NCBI GenBank assembly: GCA_000708835.1
Contig: DF237310.1
Location: forward strand, 28,965 to 92,964
Reading direction: 5' to 3'
Length of the DNA stretch: 64,000 bases
Origin: Klebsormidium nitens
Lineage: Eukaryota > Plantae > Klebsormidiophyceae
The notes beneath the pieces were generated by a model. That model saw only the letters and a program-made list of their open reading frames with translations, was not told the origin of the DNA and searched no databases. A program made the translations under genes and the position numbers. Below, in pieces: positions 6,801 through 42,612 of this stretch. The stretch's first letter is position 1. Each line of letters opens with the position of its first letter.

Positions 6801-9800
6801 TACCGCTTCCTGTGTGGCGACCAAGAGCTGGGGCGGAGACCCTCAAAAGTCGCCTTTTGAGTCAGCCTCTCCCGTCAGAAGGAGGTTGAGCCTGCGAGCC
6901 TAGTCGTGAGCTGACTCTTGGATGGCTGCGTCACACCCTGAGGTAAAGCATATCCATTATAATCAGCGTTATGGTCCGACGAAGGTCACGTCACTTCGCT
7001 ATTGGATTAAAGGAGCATCTGGGATGAACCAGTGCCCGGTTGATTCGCATGACGGCGCAGAGACGAAAAGAGCCATGATTTGTAAAAGATAACTTTCGAA
7101 ACCTGTCTTCAGCACTTCAGTGAGACTGGATTTGGTACCATTACTCTCTGCAGGTGCAAGCGGTGCTCATCTATGCGGACGACAATTGCCGGGTCACTAA
7201 GCTGAAAGAGGACGCAGAGGTGCCGCTGTTGTCGACTGTTGACGGCGTCGAGTACCCATCGACCGACGTGCCCGTGCGACTGATCCACGGACGGGCGACC
7301 TTCAAGCTTAAGATCTCACAAGTGGGTTATGTTTCTTCGTTCTTTCCTTTTGTTCGGAGACTTGAATCTTGCCGTGGAAGTCTCCACCTATCTGCTTCGA
7401 GATTGGAGGGTTCAAGTGCGCACCCTACGTAGCTGTCGTTTGGCGGCCAGGGGGGGAGTTTTCAGGGGCGTTTGAACCTTGGTTGAATTCATTTTCCGCC
7501 CGCCTTGCGGGTGGTTCTCAATCTCCTACAGATTGAATCTATAAAATCATCGACACTTACTTTCCCTCTTTTACCCTTTCCGTGCTTCCGAGCCTGCTTC
7601 TCCTCAGCCGTCACTGGGCTCTTGGTCAGTCGATTCTCCACAGCTTCTTGTGAGAACGGGCATTCAATGTATTCACTTTCCACAGATCACCTCAGGCTGA
7701 ACGTCCTCTTCTAGGACTTGACAACCCTCTGAGAATCCGAGGACACCGTTCCATCCAGTCCGTGACTAGTGGCCGGCATAATTTTACCAACGGTCTTCTG
7801 ATTTCCCCTTTGCCGCTCATCGCAGCTCTCGTCCAAATGCGACAATTGCCTCTTTCGCGTCTGCTTCGAGCTACCTGGAAATGGGGCAATCAAACTCGTT
7901 CCGTAAGCTTCTCTCCATTTTCTCCAACCCATTCCTAAACCTTTTCCCTGAGCTTATTCTTCCCCTGAACGCAGCTCTCGTCCAAGTGCGACAACCGCCT
8001 CTTCCGCGTCTGCTTCGAGCCCGTCGGCCCCACCCCTTTCACCCCTAACCCATTCGCTAACCCTTCTAATTTTCCAACCGTATACTTAACCTTCTCCTGC
8101 CCTTCCCGCAGCTCTCGTCCAAGTGCGACAACCGCCTCTCCCGCGTCTGCTAAGCCCGTCAGTGTACCCCTTTCATCCCTAACCACTTCGCTGACTCAAA
8201 CGGTTTTCTAACCGTTTGCTTTACTTTCTCCCTCGCAGCTCTCGTCCAAGTGCGACAACCGCCTCTTCCGCGTCTGCTTCGAGCCCGTCGGCCCCACTCC
8301 GCGCCACCCCTTCCTGCGCGCGCTCTCGCGCCCCATCCGCTGTGTCTCGCGCGTGCGAGTGCCACGTCAGCTGCCGCACCGGTGGGGCCCCGAGTTTCTG
8401 TCAAAGCACGATTTGGCAATTTTGCCAGAGTCTCCGGGCGCGCGGAAGAAGCGGCGGCTGAACGGGGGCGCGTCACCCGCGGGCGCGTTTGACCTGGAGT
8501 TCTTTGGCAAGGAGGAGGGGCTCAGCTTTTTGGACGCGGAGATTCAAAAGTAAGTGATAAGCCTGCATTTACTAGAAAAGTTGTGAATGGTATCCTAAAA
8601 GGTACTATTTGACCTGAATTTTTTTATCAAGGAGGAGGGGCTCAGCTTCTTGGACGCGGAGATACGAAAGTGAGGGGAACAGCAGAGCGGAACGATGTTA
8701 ACGTAATTGCGTAACTGGGACTAAACAACGGAGATTACCAGCGGTCGCCGTCATCAATCCGATCAGTGCACACGTGGCTCGTTAGGTTGTGTTCGTACTC
8801 TTGTGAGAACAGTCGTGCCATTGTCTTGTCATATTGGAGGTTATTCCGATTCAGGAACCGCCAAGAGCAACATAAGCACAAAGAAACAGAAGTAAATCAA
8901 AAGAGGTTTGGTGATTCTTGTCGGAAGAGCTGGTTGTCTTCGAAGAAGTGGCTTCGCTGCTTAATGATTGGACCATCTGATGCACTACACGACAACGCCC
9001 ATGGAAGGGGCTGTCCCACATTGCCACTGATCTCTTCCCGAATATCCCCGCGGCAACAGTCGAAGCACAACATCCGTTCGTGGTACCCTCGCTTCCACTA
9101 TCTTTCGTAGGTCCGCTTCAATTCTGATAGTCTGTCCGCTCCCAACCGCCCGCCCTGGCTGGACTGCATTCTGACCCCCTGTCTGTTTTCGCTTTCTAGA
9201 AACGCCCTAGCGGCGGCATGCTCGTCCTCTGAGAGCGAGTGTTCTCTCTTGTTTGAGGTTTTCCGGAAGCTCCCACCCGCAAAGAACTCTGGGGAGCATA
9301 GTGCCACCTCAAATTGTTCTCCGCCTCCTCTCAGGTCCGCCCTAGCACTGATGGGGGGCCAGCCCCGAGAGCCCCCCCCAAGCGCGCAAAACGGCTCAGC
9401 CCCTGCTCAACGAGAGCCGATTCACACCGAGAACGGCGGCTTCCAGGACCAGGTGGTGTACAAATACTCGCTGGAGAGCATGGCCAGCCGGGGGGAGTTC
9501 CTGAAAGCGGCCGTGAAGAAGCGCAGCGAAGCGGACCTGGCGCACTTTGCGGAGCGGGTCGCGCAGTGCACGGGGTGCCGGCACAACGGGTGAGGAGCGC
9601 GGTTATCGGTTGAAATTTGCGGTTTCAGGGTATTGCATTTTTCGTTTGGTCTTGAGAATGGAGTTCTGGTTTCTTGGCTCTCGATGCAGGAGCCAGATGA
9701 CCTTTAATGGCACGGGGTGACGGCAGAACGGGTGAGGGGCGTAGTTTTAGGGTTTAGCAGTCTGGGTTAGACGTATAGGTCATTTGCGGCACTAACAGTG

Positions 9801-36208: not shown

Positions 36209-38214
36209 TTTCAGAGGCAAGTTGAGTCCATTCCGATACATACAGACAGAGTGTAATATGTTGTCGTTGATCATTTGCGCATGCTTGTTTCGTTTGGACA
36301 TGTCTTCAACCAAATAGACTCTGCCAATCCACAAAGGAACTCGGTATTGGCTGCGGATGCCTGCCAAATGACGGCCGTGCCCCTTTGTGTAATGGCGAAT
36401 GTAGTCTGACCTAGATCAAGTCGAAGAAGGCTTGTAGCTATGTCATTCTATCAAGAGCAGCGGATAAATCTCGGTAGCATGGATTTCTGAGATGAATCCC
36501 AAACAACCTTCCCATAAAATATGATTGTTTATATGTAATTGTCCGCAGATGAACATTCACCTAGCTAAACATTCAGCCATACCATCTTCTTGTATTGGTG
36601 CAAGCTCCGCCGCGTCTCACTACAGCCGAGCCGACTCGGGGATTCTATACATATAATTTGTACTGTATTAGAGTTAATCAGTACGAATATCCACTTGCAC
36701 TCCTAGCTGCCAAGACAATCCGCTCAGCCCCTCGGATTAGCTGCACACCAACAACACAATGTACTAATGATAGACGTTGTATTATCGATATAGCTTGTCC
36801 TAGCTAGATTGCCACCTAGGGTAATCCAAAGGCTCTATGCAAACATGGCCGCGTTGGATACGATGCGAGTTCCCTTGATATTGATGATGTAATTTGAGTT
36901 CCCAACATTAAAAAGCATTGGCATCAAGAAGGATATAAGAATGATGAAGCGAAGGGAGCATAGAAGCATGAGCTGTATGCATAAAGACGTCTTCAAGATT
37001 GCAAGTTTATCGTCCCGACTCCCACGGCATTATAGGGTTTTGATAATAGGTAGAGAAGTTCTGAAGTTCAATCCTCAGACAACAGGTACCTTAGGTAGCA
37101 TCACAACTTCTACAGGGCAGATTCAGAATCGGCAGAACGATCCTGGTCAGTGGACGCTGTAGCGGCGGCGTAGCCAATGCCTCCGCTTGCGCAGCGCGCC
37201 CGTGCAGCCAATGATTAAACGCACGCGTGACACCACGGTCCACCCGTCCGGGCCCCGGGGCCGTGACCCACCGGTGACCGTATACCATATAAAATCAAGA
37301 TTACCTACTCCGTATGTCGTACGGTCCGCAATGTGACTGGACTCTGGTTGTCTAGGCCCAGGGTGGTGCTCGGGGGATCGAAAACATTACAAACCTTTAG
37401 GCTTTAACCAAGAATTCACACGCGCTGTTACCTGTACCGAGTTCGATAGCCACTTTACTGAGAACACGGTTTCAATACCCCGAATCCACCCCCTCTTTCT
37501 TCCAGGCACTTTCTTTGGTCAATTCATGGGACCAAGAGAACATCCGTACTACCTTAGCCCTTTTAAAAGTCAACGTCAATGATTAAACATCCCCGTCGGG
37601 CCCCGGTCCATCCGACTCCACATGGAGAGGACAGGGAGTGCCATAGACTCTATACCGCCAGGGCCCATTCCTGCTATATGGGTAGATCGAGCTCTATCAT
37701 TTGGAGTCTACCGGTAAACTTGTATATGCCACTCATGAGGGATCAAATGTCTGACCTCAGGAGTCAGGGCTTGATTTTCGCTGCATCAGTGAGCGGTCGC
37801 AGCGGGTCGCAGAGACGTCGTCTACTAGATACCTTCAACTTTGTAGGTACATCACAAGTTACTATGGTTTCTATCAGTGTTGGACTAAATCATGCATTAT
37901 CAGCCTGTGCAAAGCTTCCCCTAACTCTGGTCTGCGGGGGGTCCTGCGTCACTGCCTGTCTCTGCGCTGCCATGGGCCCTGCAGGAGCTCATCAACTTGT
38001 ACAGAAAAGTGACCCTACAGTTTCAGTCGGGTTTCAGTCGGAGGCAAAAGCATTGAGCCATAATGCAGGACGTCAGAATAGCTCTGCGTTGGAAGAGCAG
38101 GTGCTGATTATGTGAACAGCTCTGTTCCAACCCGCTGTCCGCATTCAATTGTTCTCTTGTCACAAAATCGGAAGTTGCTCAGAGCAAAGGCGGCGTTGAA
38201 GAACCGCCGCGACC

Positions 38215-41200
38215 ATGGCGGACCCCCTTGCAATCCTAGATTTGTGCCTAAACATCATGGATAGGTTGCAAGCCGCAGCAAGGGCGGTGGAGTTCTCAAA
38301 AAAGCAATGCATTCGGGCAGCAACTAGAGTGGCCGAGTACAAACACCGTCTGGTGGAGTGGCGGCGCCATCGGCTTGGAGATCCGGGCTCTGATTTGCTA
38401 CAGCGGATGCATGCCTTGCAAAGGTTGGAAGCCACGCTGCGGGAGGGGATCCTGCTGATAGAAACGTTTGGGAAGCAACGGTACCTGATCAGGCTGCTCC
38501 ATAGAGACGTGAATGCAGAGGGGTTTGAGACGTTCCATCAGAACCTGGACGAGTGCATCAGGGACATCACGCTCGATGTCGTCATGGAGGCAGCTGCCGC
38601 GGGGAGGGCGCACGAGGCGGAGAGGGGGCTGAGGGAACAATGTGCCAGGGAGGACAGGCAGGAGCTCAAGCAACAGATGCTTGAGCTCAAAGAAAAGTTG
38701 TTGTCTGAGGCTGGGCACAGACGGAGCGAGCAGGACAGGAACCAAGAGAAGCTGGCGCAGGAGATAGTCAATCGGCTTGATGCACGTGCATCGGAGCCTG
38801 GCCAAGATCTGGCCGTCCTCCAATTGAAGAGGCAAGACGTCCAGTACGAAGGGTGCTTAGTGCTTGGACATGGGGGGTTTGGTATAGTGTACCGGGGCCG
38901 GTATCTGAATGACGAGTGGGTGGCTGTAAAGGCGGTGGAGTGCAACCGGCCGGCGGCTCAGGGAAAAGTAATCAGGGCTCTCATGGAGGAAGCCAGGCTG
39001 TGCTTTAAGGCAAGGCACAGTCGAGTGGTGCAGCTTCTAGGGGTCTGCACGGACGAGTCGCCGTACCTTTTGGTTATGGAGTGCCTTGCCGGAACTCTAG
39101 AGAAACTCATGAGAAGGCGGCCGTCTCCTCCTTTCAGTGTGGCGGAGAGTGTGGGGATACTGCTGCAGATCGCAGAGGGCGTTCAGTTCCTGCACAGGCA
39201 GGACATAGCCCACCGAGACCTCAAACCGGCAAACATCCTTGTTGAGGATCTAGACGCGGAGCATATCAAAATCAAGCTCTGTGATTTTGGCCTGGCCAAG
39301 GTCAAGCGGGAGACTTCTCTTGCCACGTCAAAGGTGGGGACTGGTTGCTACCGTGCACCAGAGTGTCAGTCAGACGCAGCCGGCAGATACCAGGCACGAG
39401 CAGCTGACATCTATAGCTTTGGCGTGACGACCTATGAGGTGCTGACTGGGGAGTGGCCCGCCGACCTCGTGACTCAACTCGGACGAGCAGCGGCAATCGC
39501 AAAGATGGTAGAAACCGTCCGCTCCGCGTGCGGCGCTGAGCTTGCAAATCTTGTGAGCGATTGCTGCCAGCACGAACCAAACTTGCGGCCGGCTAACTTT
39601 GGCTTTGTCTGCACGAGACTCAAGCTGGCAAGGGACAGCCTCCTGGATCCGGTCGGGCTCGCGCGCCGCTTACAGGACAGCGTCCACATTGGCGAGGCCG
39701 TTGAGGCTGACTCTCTTGCGTCCCCCTCAGGTAAGCCAAACTCCTCTACTTTAAAGGTGACAATGGGCGCTTCTGTTCAGGCATCCTTTCATGTGTAATT
39801 GGCTTAAAATGCAGAGGCATCTGAAGGGGCAACAGAATCCAAGGAGGATCTCTGTCTTACATGTGGGGGTATTGATCATTCGAAAGTACGCGTCAAAGAC
39901 AACGTAAGCAGTCGTCAAAAACATCATTCCTGATCCGCTCTGCAAGAAGGGCCTGCCTTCTGCGAATCGCTCAAAGTCAGCACAGGCCCGCTGCACGCTC
40001 CATGAAAAAGTGCTGAAAAGAAGCTTGCGGTTTGCACTTTCAGGGGTTGCAAGCGAGACCTCGAGGAGCGGTGGCGCTTCATCGGCGCACGCTGACCAGG
40101 TCGGAAACTTGTCCCAGCCGCCATCCTACAAGACACCGGCAGCTTCTCCACGGTCAACCCTGCAGCCTGCAATCAGTAGTAGAGGTAAGTCATCGAGGAG
40201 GAATGATGATGCTCCCTCTCACATGTTACTCCGATCTGTTGTCCCCTCCCAACAGCTTTTTCCTCTGAGTTTCACCATTCCAATCTTCTGCCGGCAACCC
40301 CAGGCTGGGATGAAAAGTTAGCTGCTTTCGGTACGGAAACAACCCAAACTTCTAAATAAAGATATCTGATACTGAGGGTCACAAGGATGAGGGGAGTGGG
40401 GAGAAGTCCTGAGAGTTTAAGAAGTGGGTCTGTCGAGTTGTTTTTATTCCAGGAAACTTGGCGGTCCATCGTTGTTCCCTTTGATAGAGCTGCACTTTGC
40501 GGTGTCGTTTTGCTTTGAAGAAAGCGCTGTTCCTACCAAAACACATGGCTGTCTATGATGTCCCCCATGCCCATCCTCACCCCTAATTGTTCCACAATTG
40601 CATTTGTATCTAAACCACCTTTGATTTCTGATCGATTTGTGGACACACCAAGCGACAGGATTGGGCAGCGTGGCCTCCTTGACACTTCTTTGAAAGTCAA
40701 GGCCGAAAGCGGATCATATCGATGTTCATGTTGAAAAGGAGCAACTCATCAAGCAGACATAGTTCTTTGAAGAGAGAACCATGAAGCTGCGCAATCAGGC
40801 ACGTGCATGCAGACGTTCCTCCAAACGTCTGTCACTTAATCCTGATTCAGAAGAAAGGGAGCGGGCCGCTTTCGAGACGTGGAGGAAGACTGTCGGGAGC
40901 GACGGAGAGGCGACGTGGGAGCGCTTCTGGGAGCTGTTCGAGGGCGACCTCCACATCTGGGACGACGAAGAACGAGCCCGGTTCCAGGACCAGGTTTGCC
41001 GTAGCCCTGTTGCCCCGACAATCAAGAGAGCGGAGTGGGTCCGGGCGGTTGGCTCGAGCGCGAGCGCGATTGACTTCTGGAAGAGCGCGAAGCAGAGGAG
41101 GTGGTCGCCTGCGGGCTTGGCGCGGGGACAAACGGACGGGCAGTGGACCCACAAAGTCGAGGCGCCCGCGGGCGCGTTCATTGTCCAGTGGAAGGTGACG

Positions 41201-41559
41201 ACGAGGCAGACGGGCGCCGTGTGTACGGGGAGGAGACGTTCACGATCGACACGGTGGTTGGGATCCAGGGGAAGACGGGCAGTGGGCAGTGGCTGGATCT
41301 GCTAGGAATCGCGGACGCTGGGGCGGGCAAAACACTCCCCGAGCAACCGGACGGGTTCGCTCGAGTGACTGGGAGGGCAGGTGGCTGGCTGACCAACTTC
41401 ATGGGCGTTGGTGCCGTCCGTGACTCGCCGTGGGAGGATTCCGGAGAGCGGGCCGGCTTGACCCCGAGCAGCAGAGTCGTGGGCTACCAGATGCGGGTGA
41501 CCGGTAGTTACGCCGAGACGGTTCGGTTCCTGTTTGCAGAGCCAGTCCGGACTGTTTGA
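38215..41559 (+). CDS. MLKL-type N-terminal four-helix bundle + coiled coil + catalytically intact TKL-like kinase + helical segment + putative jacalin-like (beta-prism) domain; exons 38215-39730, 40044-40184, 40851-41559; apparent 2-nt insertion at ~41219-41224
   Basis: Kinase motifs LGHGGFGIVYRG, VAVK, HRDLKPAN, DFG, YRAPE and DIYSFG are all present. The N-terminus aligns by eye with the MLKL 4HB (KKQCIRAATRV vs human KKQCRRLGHRV). All three splice junctions are phase 1. The last exon needs removal of one TG from GTGTGT to join ORF 40781-41305 with ORF 41101-41559. Confidence 0.8.
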
Positions 41560-42612
41560 CGGTCTGGTCGGGGGTAGATGTCAATGATATAGGTGGGTTC
41601 TACAGAAAGCGTTGAAAATACATGACGGTATTGTACGGGGATTGTGTGTATAAGTACTAAGTAATAGCGCGTTGATTGGAGTTTAGCGAAACTTCTTAGT
41701 AGCTCGTCAAGTAGTTGGTCACTAACGATGATATAGCCAGGCGTGTTTCTGCACGGGATCGTCAAAGTTGAGAACAGTACGGGTATACAAGATTGATCAC
41801 ATGCAATCACCTTTCATGCTACCGTCCATATACAAAGGCAATGTCTTGTCCAGTCCAAGCTGTGCCTGACATTGCAGGGGGTCGCCCGAGGGGCATGGGC
41901 ATCCGCCGGATAACATTGTGGCGGTAATTCATTTGCAATCAAGGCGGTTTTGTGCAAGTATATAGAGACATATAGCCGGGGGCCCGGACACGGCAGAGAT
42001 CAGATTGAGTGCTACAACCGTCGTGACATGAAGCTGTCAGAGACTGAGTACGTGTATTTGTATGATGCCGCCGTATAGGTCTTAAGCAATGATTGTGCGC
42101 AAGTGCTAGGTCCGGTTTGCACCGTCATGGACCGCATGACCGCGTCCGATTGAAGACCATACGAGTCCCCTGATGTATATCTCAATCAAGATTTGAGCGG
42201 CCCGTTTGCATGGATACGTGGTTCTACCGGCCTTGTCGATTGCAACAACTCAAGATATATATGCAATGACAACGCACATGCATACCTATTGATATATAAT
42301 GATCAGTGCCATGCAGTCAATCATTGCGCATGCATGTACTTCTACTAACATAGTATATGCCCAGGTCGTATCCTCTCGCATTAATACGTGCTAAGTTCGA
42401 ATGCGCCAGATGACGATTTGTGCAGATTAAAATAACGGCGCGAACAAGACGTGCAGATGACGTGGCACCTGACAGTGGTATCATTTGAGGACTGCCTGAC
42501 TCCATAGTGCCAGATAATTAGCACATGCCTCCCGAGTCGCCAGAGAAGTTCTCCTCCCATTTAACCAACACCTTTTCCCAACTAAAGCGCGCCAACAACT
42601 AAGCGCGTAAGA

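Follow-up and report, generated by a model that had tools for sequence, protein, structure and literature searches.

An expressed MLKL_N-kinase gene of the streptophyte alga Klebsormidium nitens whose C-terminal domain, of predicted beta-prism fold, is broken by a frameshift

We analyzed a gene of the streptophyte alga Klebsormidium nitens that lies at positions 38215 to 41559 of a 64,000-nucleotide stretch of genomic DNA (GenBank contig DF237310.1, positions 28,965 to 92,964; the whole stretch is called the window here, and coordinates refer to it unless another sequence is named). The gene joins an N-terminal domain of the MLKL_N family, assigned by profile, to a brace-like helix, a protein kinase domain with intact catalytic motifs, a Ser/Pro-rich linker, and a helical EF-hand-like region, followed by a domain of predicted beta-prism fold whose reading frame is broken. 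The open reading frame (ORF) at 38215-39798, with 527 codons, is real. Among database proteins it was matched best, at 99% identity, by P0001, a protein of 763 residues that carries no annotation beyond [quoted passage not shown] P0001 could be rebuilt from the window with exons at 38215-39730, 40044-40184, 40851-41194, and 41269-41559, separated by introns of 313, 666, and 74 nucleotides, and the translation is exactly that of P0001. The features of the locus are as follows.

37700-38214, + strand: 5' leader; RNA contigs begin at 37700-37784, and eight upstream ATGs are present
38215-39730, + strand: coding part of exon 1 (MLKL_N bundle, brace, kinase); four RNA runs splice at the GT donor that follows 39730, phase 1
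38260-38661, + strand: MLKL_N domain (four-helix-bundle type), residues 16-149, Pfam PF22215
38602-38814, + strand: brace-like long helix, about residues 130-200, within a continuous AlphaFold helix at 104-193 in a model of low overall confidence
38860-39594, + strand: protein kinase domain, residues 216-460, catalytic motifs intact, Pfam Pkinase
39731-40043, + strand: intron 1, 313 nucleotides, GT..AG splicing in X1, X5, X9, and X10
40044-40184, + strand: exon 2, 141 nucleotides, Ser/Pro-rich linker of 47 codons, phase 1-1, from RNA junctions
40185-40850, + strand: intron 2, 666 nucleotides, GT..AG splicing in all four runs
40851-41830, + strand: exon 3, the last exon; mRNA 3' ends at about 41783-41867
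40853-41089, + strand: helical EF-hand-like pair, residues 554-632, probably degenerate, a structural lead
41096-41221, + strand: first prism strands in the exon-3 frame; GQTDGQW to AGAFIVQWKV match homologues
41195-41268, + strand: 74-nucleotide "intron" of the public model, unsupported, with no joint in four RNA assemblies
41219-41224, + strand: GTGTGT run, the frame-change point, from the codon tables of both frames and a profile alignment that is gapless across an X placed there
41224-41559, + strand: remaining prism codons, about 110, out of frame with the mRNA ORF, stop at 41557-41559, from the homologue profile
41303-41305, + strand: stop codon of the observed mRNA frame (703-residue product), from translation of exons 1, 2, and 3

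Transcript structure was taken from Logan contigs of four runs (X1, X5, X9, and X10) from four studies, aligned over 37700-42000. These runs, listed as "RNA?," were taken as RNA because their contigs contain spliced joints. Assembled contigs lose rare isoforms, and they cannot prove the absence of a joint. The introns at 39731-40043 and 40185-40850 were removed with GT..AG ends in all four runs, which agrees with the exon edges (39730, 40044-40184, and 40851) and phase-1 junctions that had been proposed from the sequence alone. One X9 contig of 3,149 nucleotides spans 37700 to 41826 across both junctions, and the bundle, kinase, linker, and last exon are therefore carried by a single transcript. 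The proposal that three exons form one transcript is thus confirmed, and transcripts do not end after exon 1. Exon 3 was continuous in RNA from 40849 to 41826 in X9, to 41783 in X1, to 41867 in X5, and up to 41278 in X10. Minor forms retaining introns 1 and 2 were recovered in X1 (depth 5.8 and 26.5, compared with about 130). The gene is expressed, being transcribed and correctly spliced in four studies. Its mRNA has a leader of about 430 to 515 nucleotides, in which the longest upstream ORF (37726-38115, up to 129 codons) shares the frame of the main ORF and is closed by a stop 100 nucleotides upstream of the start codon. The main ORF may need leaky scanning or reinitiation to be translated.

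Translated as transcribed, exons 1, 2, and 3 encode 703 residues, ending at 41303-41305. The original prediction had treated 40851-41559 as one open exon frame. Instead, the exon-3 frame stops at that codon, and the beta-rich stretch that had been read as its C-terminus ("...RVTGRAGGWLTNF...VRFLF") sits in the frame of the ORF at 41101-41559. A full HMMER scan of the latter frame against 1.84 billion representative proteins found about 20 short relatives, and their alignments begin inside the annotated 74-nucleotide intron. A profile built from these relatives, with K. nitens excluded, scores 112.7 bits (E 1.4e-36) on the second frame, from 41221 to its end. The first part of the domain, GQTDGQW to AGAFIVQWKV, is encoded in the exon-3 frame and matches the domain starts of Trebouxia and Apatococcus proteins and the upstream exons of two environmental loci. 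From the GTGTGT run at 41219-41224, the domain continues one base out of phase. When an X was placed at this break, the C-terminus matched the full-length family profile as one gapless domain at positions 6-144, with 133.1 bits. The public model scored 6.1 plus 90.5 bits and lost positions 22-42, roughly two prism strands, and the actual mRNA frame scored 15.4 bits at positions 6-33 only.

The genome and the RNA agree on this break: the contigs of the four runs were reported with zero inserted, deleted, or changed letters relative to the genome. The splice joint 41194/41269 was not found in the contigs of any of the four runs, and the 25 codons that the 74-nucleotide intron would remove align with conserved residues of all homologues. 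We conclude that the frameshift is genuine, being the same in the genome and in four RNA assemblies, and that the 74-nucleotide intron is a patch in the gene model that hides it. Because this intron is not spliced in the contigs and the frame breaks at 41219-41224, the observed mRNA encodes 703 residues with a mere stump of the prism; the expressed frame contains no complete prism domain. The out-of-frame part of the prism is free of stop codons and has retained each near-invariant residue of the family, and for this reason the frameshift appears to be recent and is perhaps strain specific.

The tail translated beyond the break (41222-41302) comprises 27 codons, is rich in Arg, Ser, and Gly with a Cys at its end, and has no match to the prism family. 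When metagenomes were scanned for variants of the break, with 3 to 7 bases allowed in place of the GTGTGT run, the three contigs obtained were bacterial; the similarity extends over only about 40 bases, and they were rejected as chance matches.

At the N-terminus, residues 16-149 match the Pfam family MLKL_N (PF22215) with 31.8 bits (E 1.2e-7), above the curated cutoff of 27; the match covers profile positions 9-135 of 142 (127 positions) and scores 29.1 bits when the full ORF is scanned. The resemblance to the MLKL bundle that had first been drawn by eye is thus upheld by a profile, and at that level the N-terminus belongs to MLKL_N. Protein-language-model neighbors of residues 1-200, which we treat as a lead only, all fall in MLKL_N, RPW8, MCAfunc, or DUF7792 clusters (scores 0.79 to 0.86), and the ten best family-bearing neighbors are all MLKL_N, RPW8, or MCAfunc. 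Because no relative of the N-terminus was found among 5.8 billion proteins, its AlphaFold model was made from the single sequence, and confidence was low (pLDDT, the predicted value in the local distance difference test, 61.5; predicted template-modeling score, 0.37). In this low-confidence model, helices are predicted in the expected places, at residues 4-24, 29-52, and 61-85, with a short helix at 89-96 and a long one at 104-193, the latter reaching a pLDDT of 78 to 84 at residues 150-190. A Foldseek search with this poor model placed the executioner domain of human MLKL (6d74) first, a weak, suggestive match (E 0.096; template-modeling [TM] score, about 0.34 to 0.45), and several further MLKL entries were within the list. 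A pairwise search of the N-terminus against Protein Data Bank (PDB) sequences gave no MLKL match. Taken together, the profile and the model suggest that the fold is probably an MLKL-type four-helix bundle.

The brace-like helix is followed by a kinase domain (Pkinase, 157.9 bits) that bears GHGGFG at residues 218-223, VAVK at 236-239, LMEEARL with the alphaC Glu at 256-262, HRDLKPAN at 333-340, DFG at 357-359, and APE at 381-383, as well as a DIYSFG motif. The intact VAVK, HRD, and DFG of the original prediction are all among them. The kinase therefore looks catalytically competent and is predicted to be active. MLKL pseudokinases lack the phosphotransfer residues and this protein keeps every catalytic motif, so we do not class it as a canonical MLKL. 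Its best solved relatives (MLK4, MLK1, RIPK1, MLKL, BRAF, and IRAK4) place it in the tyrosine-kinase-like (TKL) group without resolving the subfamily. The full-length protein is colinear with the solved MLKL chain 6lk5, with query residues 23-460 on chain residues 19-458.

Downstream of the kinase, exon 2 supplies the Ser/Pro linker that had been anticipated, 47 residues long. Residues 554-632, which include the "TWERFWELF" segment, gave an Atlas model that superposes on EF-hand pairs and on the Cbl EF-hand with TM scores of 0.55 to 0.67. A Pfam scan of these residues gave no match, and both loops, judged by eye, are without acidic ligands. In locus L011, the sequence immediately upstream of the prism exon weakly matches this region (E 1e-3, small database). 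We regard the EF-hand-like identity as a lead and not as a finding.

The C-terminal domain belongs to a green-algal family that has no Pfam entry. Its fold was examined on a homologue, P0147:189-344, the second prism copy of a Trebouxia sp. C0006 protein, with a 23-row alignment that included the K. nitens piece. The resulting model is all-beta, with a pLDDT of 81.5 and a predicted template-modeling score of 0.78. Almost all of the top 50 Foldseek matches are jacalin-related lectins (ZG16, ZG16b, banana lectin, ipomoelin, and artocarpin; TM 0.55 to 0.70). In VIA-align, the model superposed on ZG16 with a Z score of 12.0 over 131 residues at a 3.2-Å root-mean-square deviation, and all 50 listed entries are beta-prism I. 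An Atlas search with the prism model returned VOMI and Jacalin clusters (TM 0.61 to 0.70). On these models, the family is predicted to have a jacalin-like beta-prism I fold. The guess of a jacalin-type beta-prism had thus been right about the fold, as modeled on a homologue; no Pfam family, whether Jacalin (PF01419), VOMI, or any other, matched the K. nitens pieces scanned to E 10 or ten homologues scanned to E 0.1. Identity to jacalin-related lectins is about 10%. In the family alignment, inspected by eye, a Gly-rich start, GQxxGxW, is conserved, but the family as a whole does not keep the GxxxD of the sugar-binding loop: the last hairpin is GSYAE in K. nitens and VD[ST]A in some members, and in others it has no acidic residue. 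The prism domain, used as a language-model query, yielded no usable match. Matches of the prism query to the bacterial immunoglobulin-repeat proteins P0141, P0143, and P0145 were set aside as repeat or compositional.

The two named members of the prism family come from the trebouxiophyte green algae Trebouxia and Apatococcus, and both are annotated as hypothetical. P0147 (Trebouxia sp. C0006) is a tandem two-prism protein, and in P0164 (Apatococcus fuscideae) a lone prism is preceded by a hydrophobic segment resembling a membrane anchor. Of nine homologue loci whose neighboring ORFs were examined, six have a TIR domain in the same or an adjacent ORF: P0140 combines prism and TIR in one ORF, and five further loci have a TIR ORF downstream on the same strand within 0.2 to 1.1 kb. 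A kinase-like core is joined to a prism in P0166, encoded by a spliced transcript contig; in genomic contigs, its exons lie apart. The best PDB match of this core is the NIK kinase core (E 1e-3), and it has HGA for HRD and SGFE for DFG, so that the catalytic Asp and the DFG Asp are missing. The relevant contigs are listed here. Those with TIR are environmental and alga-like, and in them prism and TIR lie on adjacent same-strand ORFs except in L001.

L001, 10001-10987: prism and TIR in one ORF
L002, 2683-3213 and 4271-4831: prism and TIR
L008, 2026-3528: prism and TIR
L010, 6403-7824: prism and TIR
L012, 1332-2400: prism and TIR
L014, 117-1040, exons also in L015-L017: pseudokinase-prism P0166, N-terminus cut by the contig end

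From these sequences, the prism appears to associate with domains of immune or death type, and K. nitens is not alone in pairing it with a kinase fold. When the K. nitens bundle and kinase were compared with the prism-homologue loci by tblastn, nothing matched, and no second gene combining MLKL_N, kinase, and prism was found. L001 also carries a leucine-rich repeat ORF (8280-8717), 1.3 kb upstream.

We consider it likely that the locus is an expressed K. nitens gene of MLKL_NTD-kinase type, encoding a bundle, a brace, a competent TKL-like Ser/Thr kinase, a linker, and an EF-hand-like pair, which once ended in a complete prism and is now frameshifted at 41219-41224 to give a 703-residue protein whose Arg-rich tail is out of frame. 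Together, the bundle, brace, and kinase would form an autoinhibited unit, as in Pm13/MLKL-K and MLKL. Activation would lead to kinase-dependent signaling and possibly to membrane attack by the bundle. The prism would formerly have served as a ligand-binding or clustering module, as may be the case in its TIR-fused relatives, and the present allele would act without prism input. We infer a role in cell death or immunity, and likewise autoinhibition, kinase activity, and ligand sensing by the prism. The original prediction went further, to a glycan sensor, a switch, and a pore-forming effector in one polypeptide. That chain is not what the gene now encodes, because the frameshift ends the protein after the first prism strands; glycan sensing and pore formation are putative functions.

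Several points weigh against this reading. The RNA evidence consists of assembled contigs, in which a minor spliced form could be missed, and all runs share the organism label and may represent one strain, so the frameshift may be strain specific. The MLKL_N assignment depends mainly on one profile match, the three-dimensional model of the N-terminus is poor (pLDDT 61.5), and no sequence relative but itself was returned among the 5.8 billion proteins, whether residues 1-200 were searched within the full protein or residues 1-205 alone. Moreover, the N-terminal domain of Pm13 alone did not kill (PMC11297308). A modest chance attaches to a different, on balance unlikely, account, in which the gene encodes an ordinary TKL/MAP3K-like signaling kinase, its N-terminal helices form a regulatory or dimerizing coiled coil with no membrane or death role, and the MLKL_N match reflects a generic helical bundle. 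The best solved relatives of the kinase, MLK4 and MLK1, are MAP3Ks, pairwise comparison of the N-terminus with MLKL structures gave no match and its fold model is weak, and in Pm13 it was the brace-kinase fragment, and not the MLKL_NTD, that caused death (PMC11297308). Yet the MLKL_N score exceeds the curated cutoff over 127 of 142 profile positions, all ten of the best family-bearing language-model neighbors are MLKL_N, RPW8, or MCAfunc, entries for the MLKL executioner domain lead the Foldseek list despite the poor model, and the former C-terminal domain accompanies TIR domains elsewhere.

The remaining alternatives concern the break. Its presence in the last domain, together with the long leader with many upstream ATGs and the lack of a close orthologue in the databases searched, could mean that the whole locus is a decaying pseudogene of which the frameshift is the first visible lesion. 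We think this improbable: no stop interrupts the 1,516 nucleotides of exon 1, where each kinase motif is retained, four studies contain correctly spliced transcripts of the gene, and the stop-free, out-of-frame prism with all its near-invariant residues indicates a recent lesion. A somewhat smaller chance attaches to the public 763-residue model, under which 41195-41268 is removed and a slightly shortened, functional prism completes an intact sensor-switch-executioner chain. The segment does end in GT..AG, its removal restores the frame, and contigs can miss rare isoforms. However, its joint was seen in none of the four runs, although X1 recovered minor intron-retaining forms (5.8 and 26.5 against about 130), and for that reason a spliced form of comparable abundance would probably have shown up. 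In addition, the 25 codons removed align with residues conserved in all homologues, and the spliced product would be without profile positions 22-42, about two strands. Very improbable, finally, is a shift of frame by the ribosome at the break that yields the full-length prism from unspliced mRNA. The perfectly preserved downstream frame would fit such recoding, but a recent mutation explains that preservation equally well, no slippery heptamer lies at 41216-41226, and nothing else suggests recoding. An expressed gene that recently lost its prism thus remains our preferred explanation.

A broader proposal can be put forward tentatively, as a minority possibility. The prism family may be a swappable sensor module of terrestrial green algae, joined variously to TIR, to an MLKL bundle with an active kinase, or to a pseudokinase, and also present in membrane-anchored forms. 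It would then represent a modular receptor-executioner system, independent of nucleotide-binding leucine-rich-repeat receptors (NLRs), that predates land plants. In such a system, the K. nitens gene would have been a complete single-chain sensor, switch, and executioner until two bases slipped very recently, and other Klebsormidium strains would be expected to retain intact orthologues.

For plant immunity, the locus places in a streptophyte alga a design of MLKL bundle and active kinase that was known from wheat resistance genes, and it bears on whether the MLKL pseudokinases of plants and animals descend from active kinases. The prism family, without a Pfam entry and repeatedly adjoining TIR in green algae, is a candidate recognition module for algal immunity. 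The public gene model is also corrected. The 763-residue protein is probably not made, since a short predicted intron masks a frameshift, and surveys of architecture that rely on such models would count a fusion that the sequenced strain no longer expresses.

Joining a bundle to an active kinase, which the original prediction took to be an undescribed architecture, is already known. Wheat Pm13/MLKL-K combines MLKL_NTD, a brace, and a catalytically competent kinase (PMC10951266, PMC11297308), and 714 MLKL_NTD-kinase proteins have been listed for Poaceae and Arabidopsis (PMC10951266), so that hundreds of grass proteins share this design. An older survey reported no RPW8 genes in Klebsormidium nitens (PMC5039405), and a later NLR survey recorded an "MLKL" class in all tested species, with no detail (PMC11218826). 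In our literature search, no description turned up of this K. nitens gene or of an MLKL-type protein with a beta-prism. What is new is the algal occurrence, the EF-hand-like and beta-prism tail, and, in other algae, the repeated fusion of the prism family to TIR and its fusion to a pseudokinase.

By sequence and model, the algal protein shows the Pm13/MLKL-K architecture of MLKL_NTD, brace, and competent Ser/Thr kinase in one chain. Like Pm13/MLKL-K of Aegilops longissima, it has a bundle, a helical brace, and a kinase with all catalytic residues, and both proteins are cytosolic, with no signal peptide or NB-ARC. Pm13, however, has 476 residues and ends after the kinase, whereas the algal gene adds the Ser/Pro linker, the EF-hand-like pair, and the broken prism. 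The Pm13 kinase belongs to RLK/Pelle LRR_8B, whereas the algal kinase has its best solved relatives among those of MLK, RIPK, and RAF type. The likeness described here is one of architecture. PDB matches to MLK, RIPK, and RAF rather than to plant RLKs neither show nor exclude a descent shared with land-plant MLKL_NTD-kinases. In Pm13, a brace-kinase fragment triggers kinase-dependent cell death and the N-terminal domain with the brace does not kill (PMC11297308), which makes execution by the bundle just one of the two mechanisms still to be considered.

Animal MLKL and Arabidopsis MLKL1-3 share with the algal protein the order of bundle, brace, and kinase fold, and plant MLKLs share a Ser-rich region after the kinase fold. 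The kinase-like domains of animal MLKL and AtMLKL1-3 are without phosphotransfer residues (bioRxiv 10.1101/681015) and are pseudokinases, whereas the algal protein retains GxGxxG, VAVK, HRD, DFG, and APE. With the jacalin-related lectins and other beta-prism I proteins (ZG16, banana lectin, artocarpin, and VMO-I), the algal family shares a predicted fold (Z scores of 10 to 12 over 120 to 131 residues). It differs from them in its low identity, in having no Jacalin or VOMI Pfam match, and in not conserving GxxxD, and the K. nitens domain is split by the frameshift. Zebrafish Dln1 and the lamprey immune protein, both among the structural matches, likewise carry a beta-prism module and a membrane-damaging module on one chain. 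In those secreted proteins, the killing module is a beta-pore-forming aerolysin fold instead of a helical bundle, and there is no kinase.

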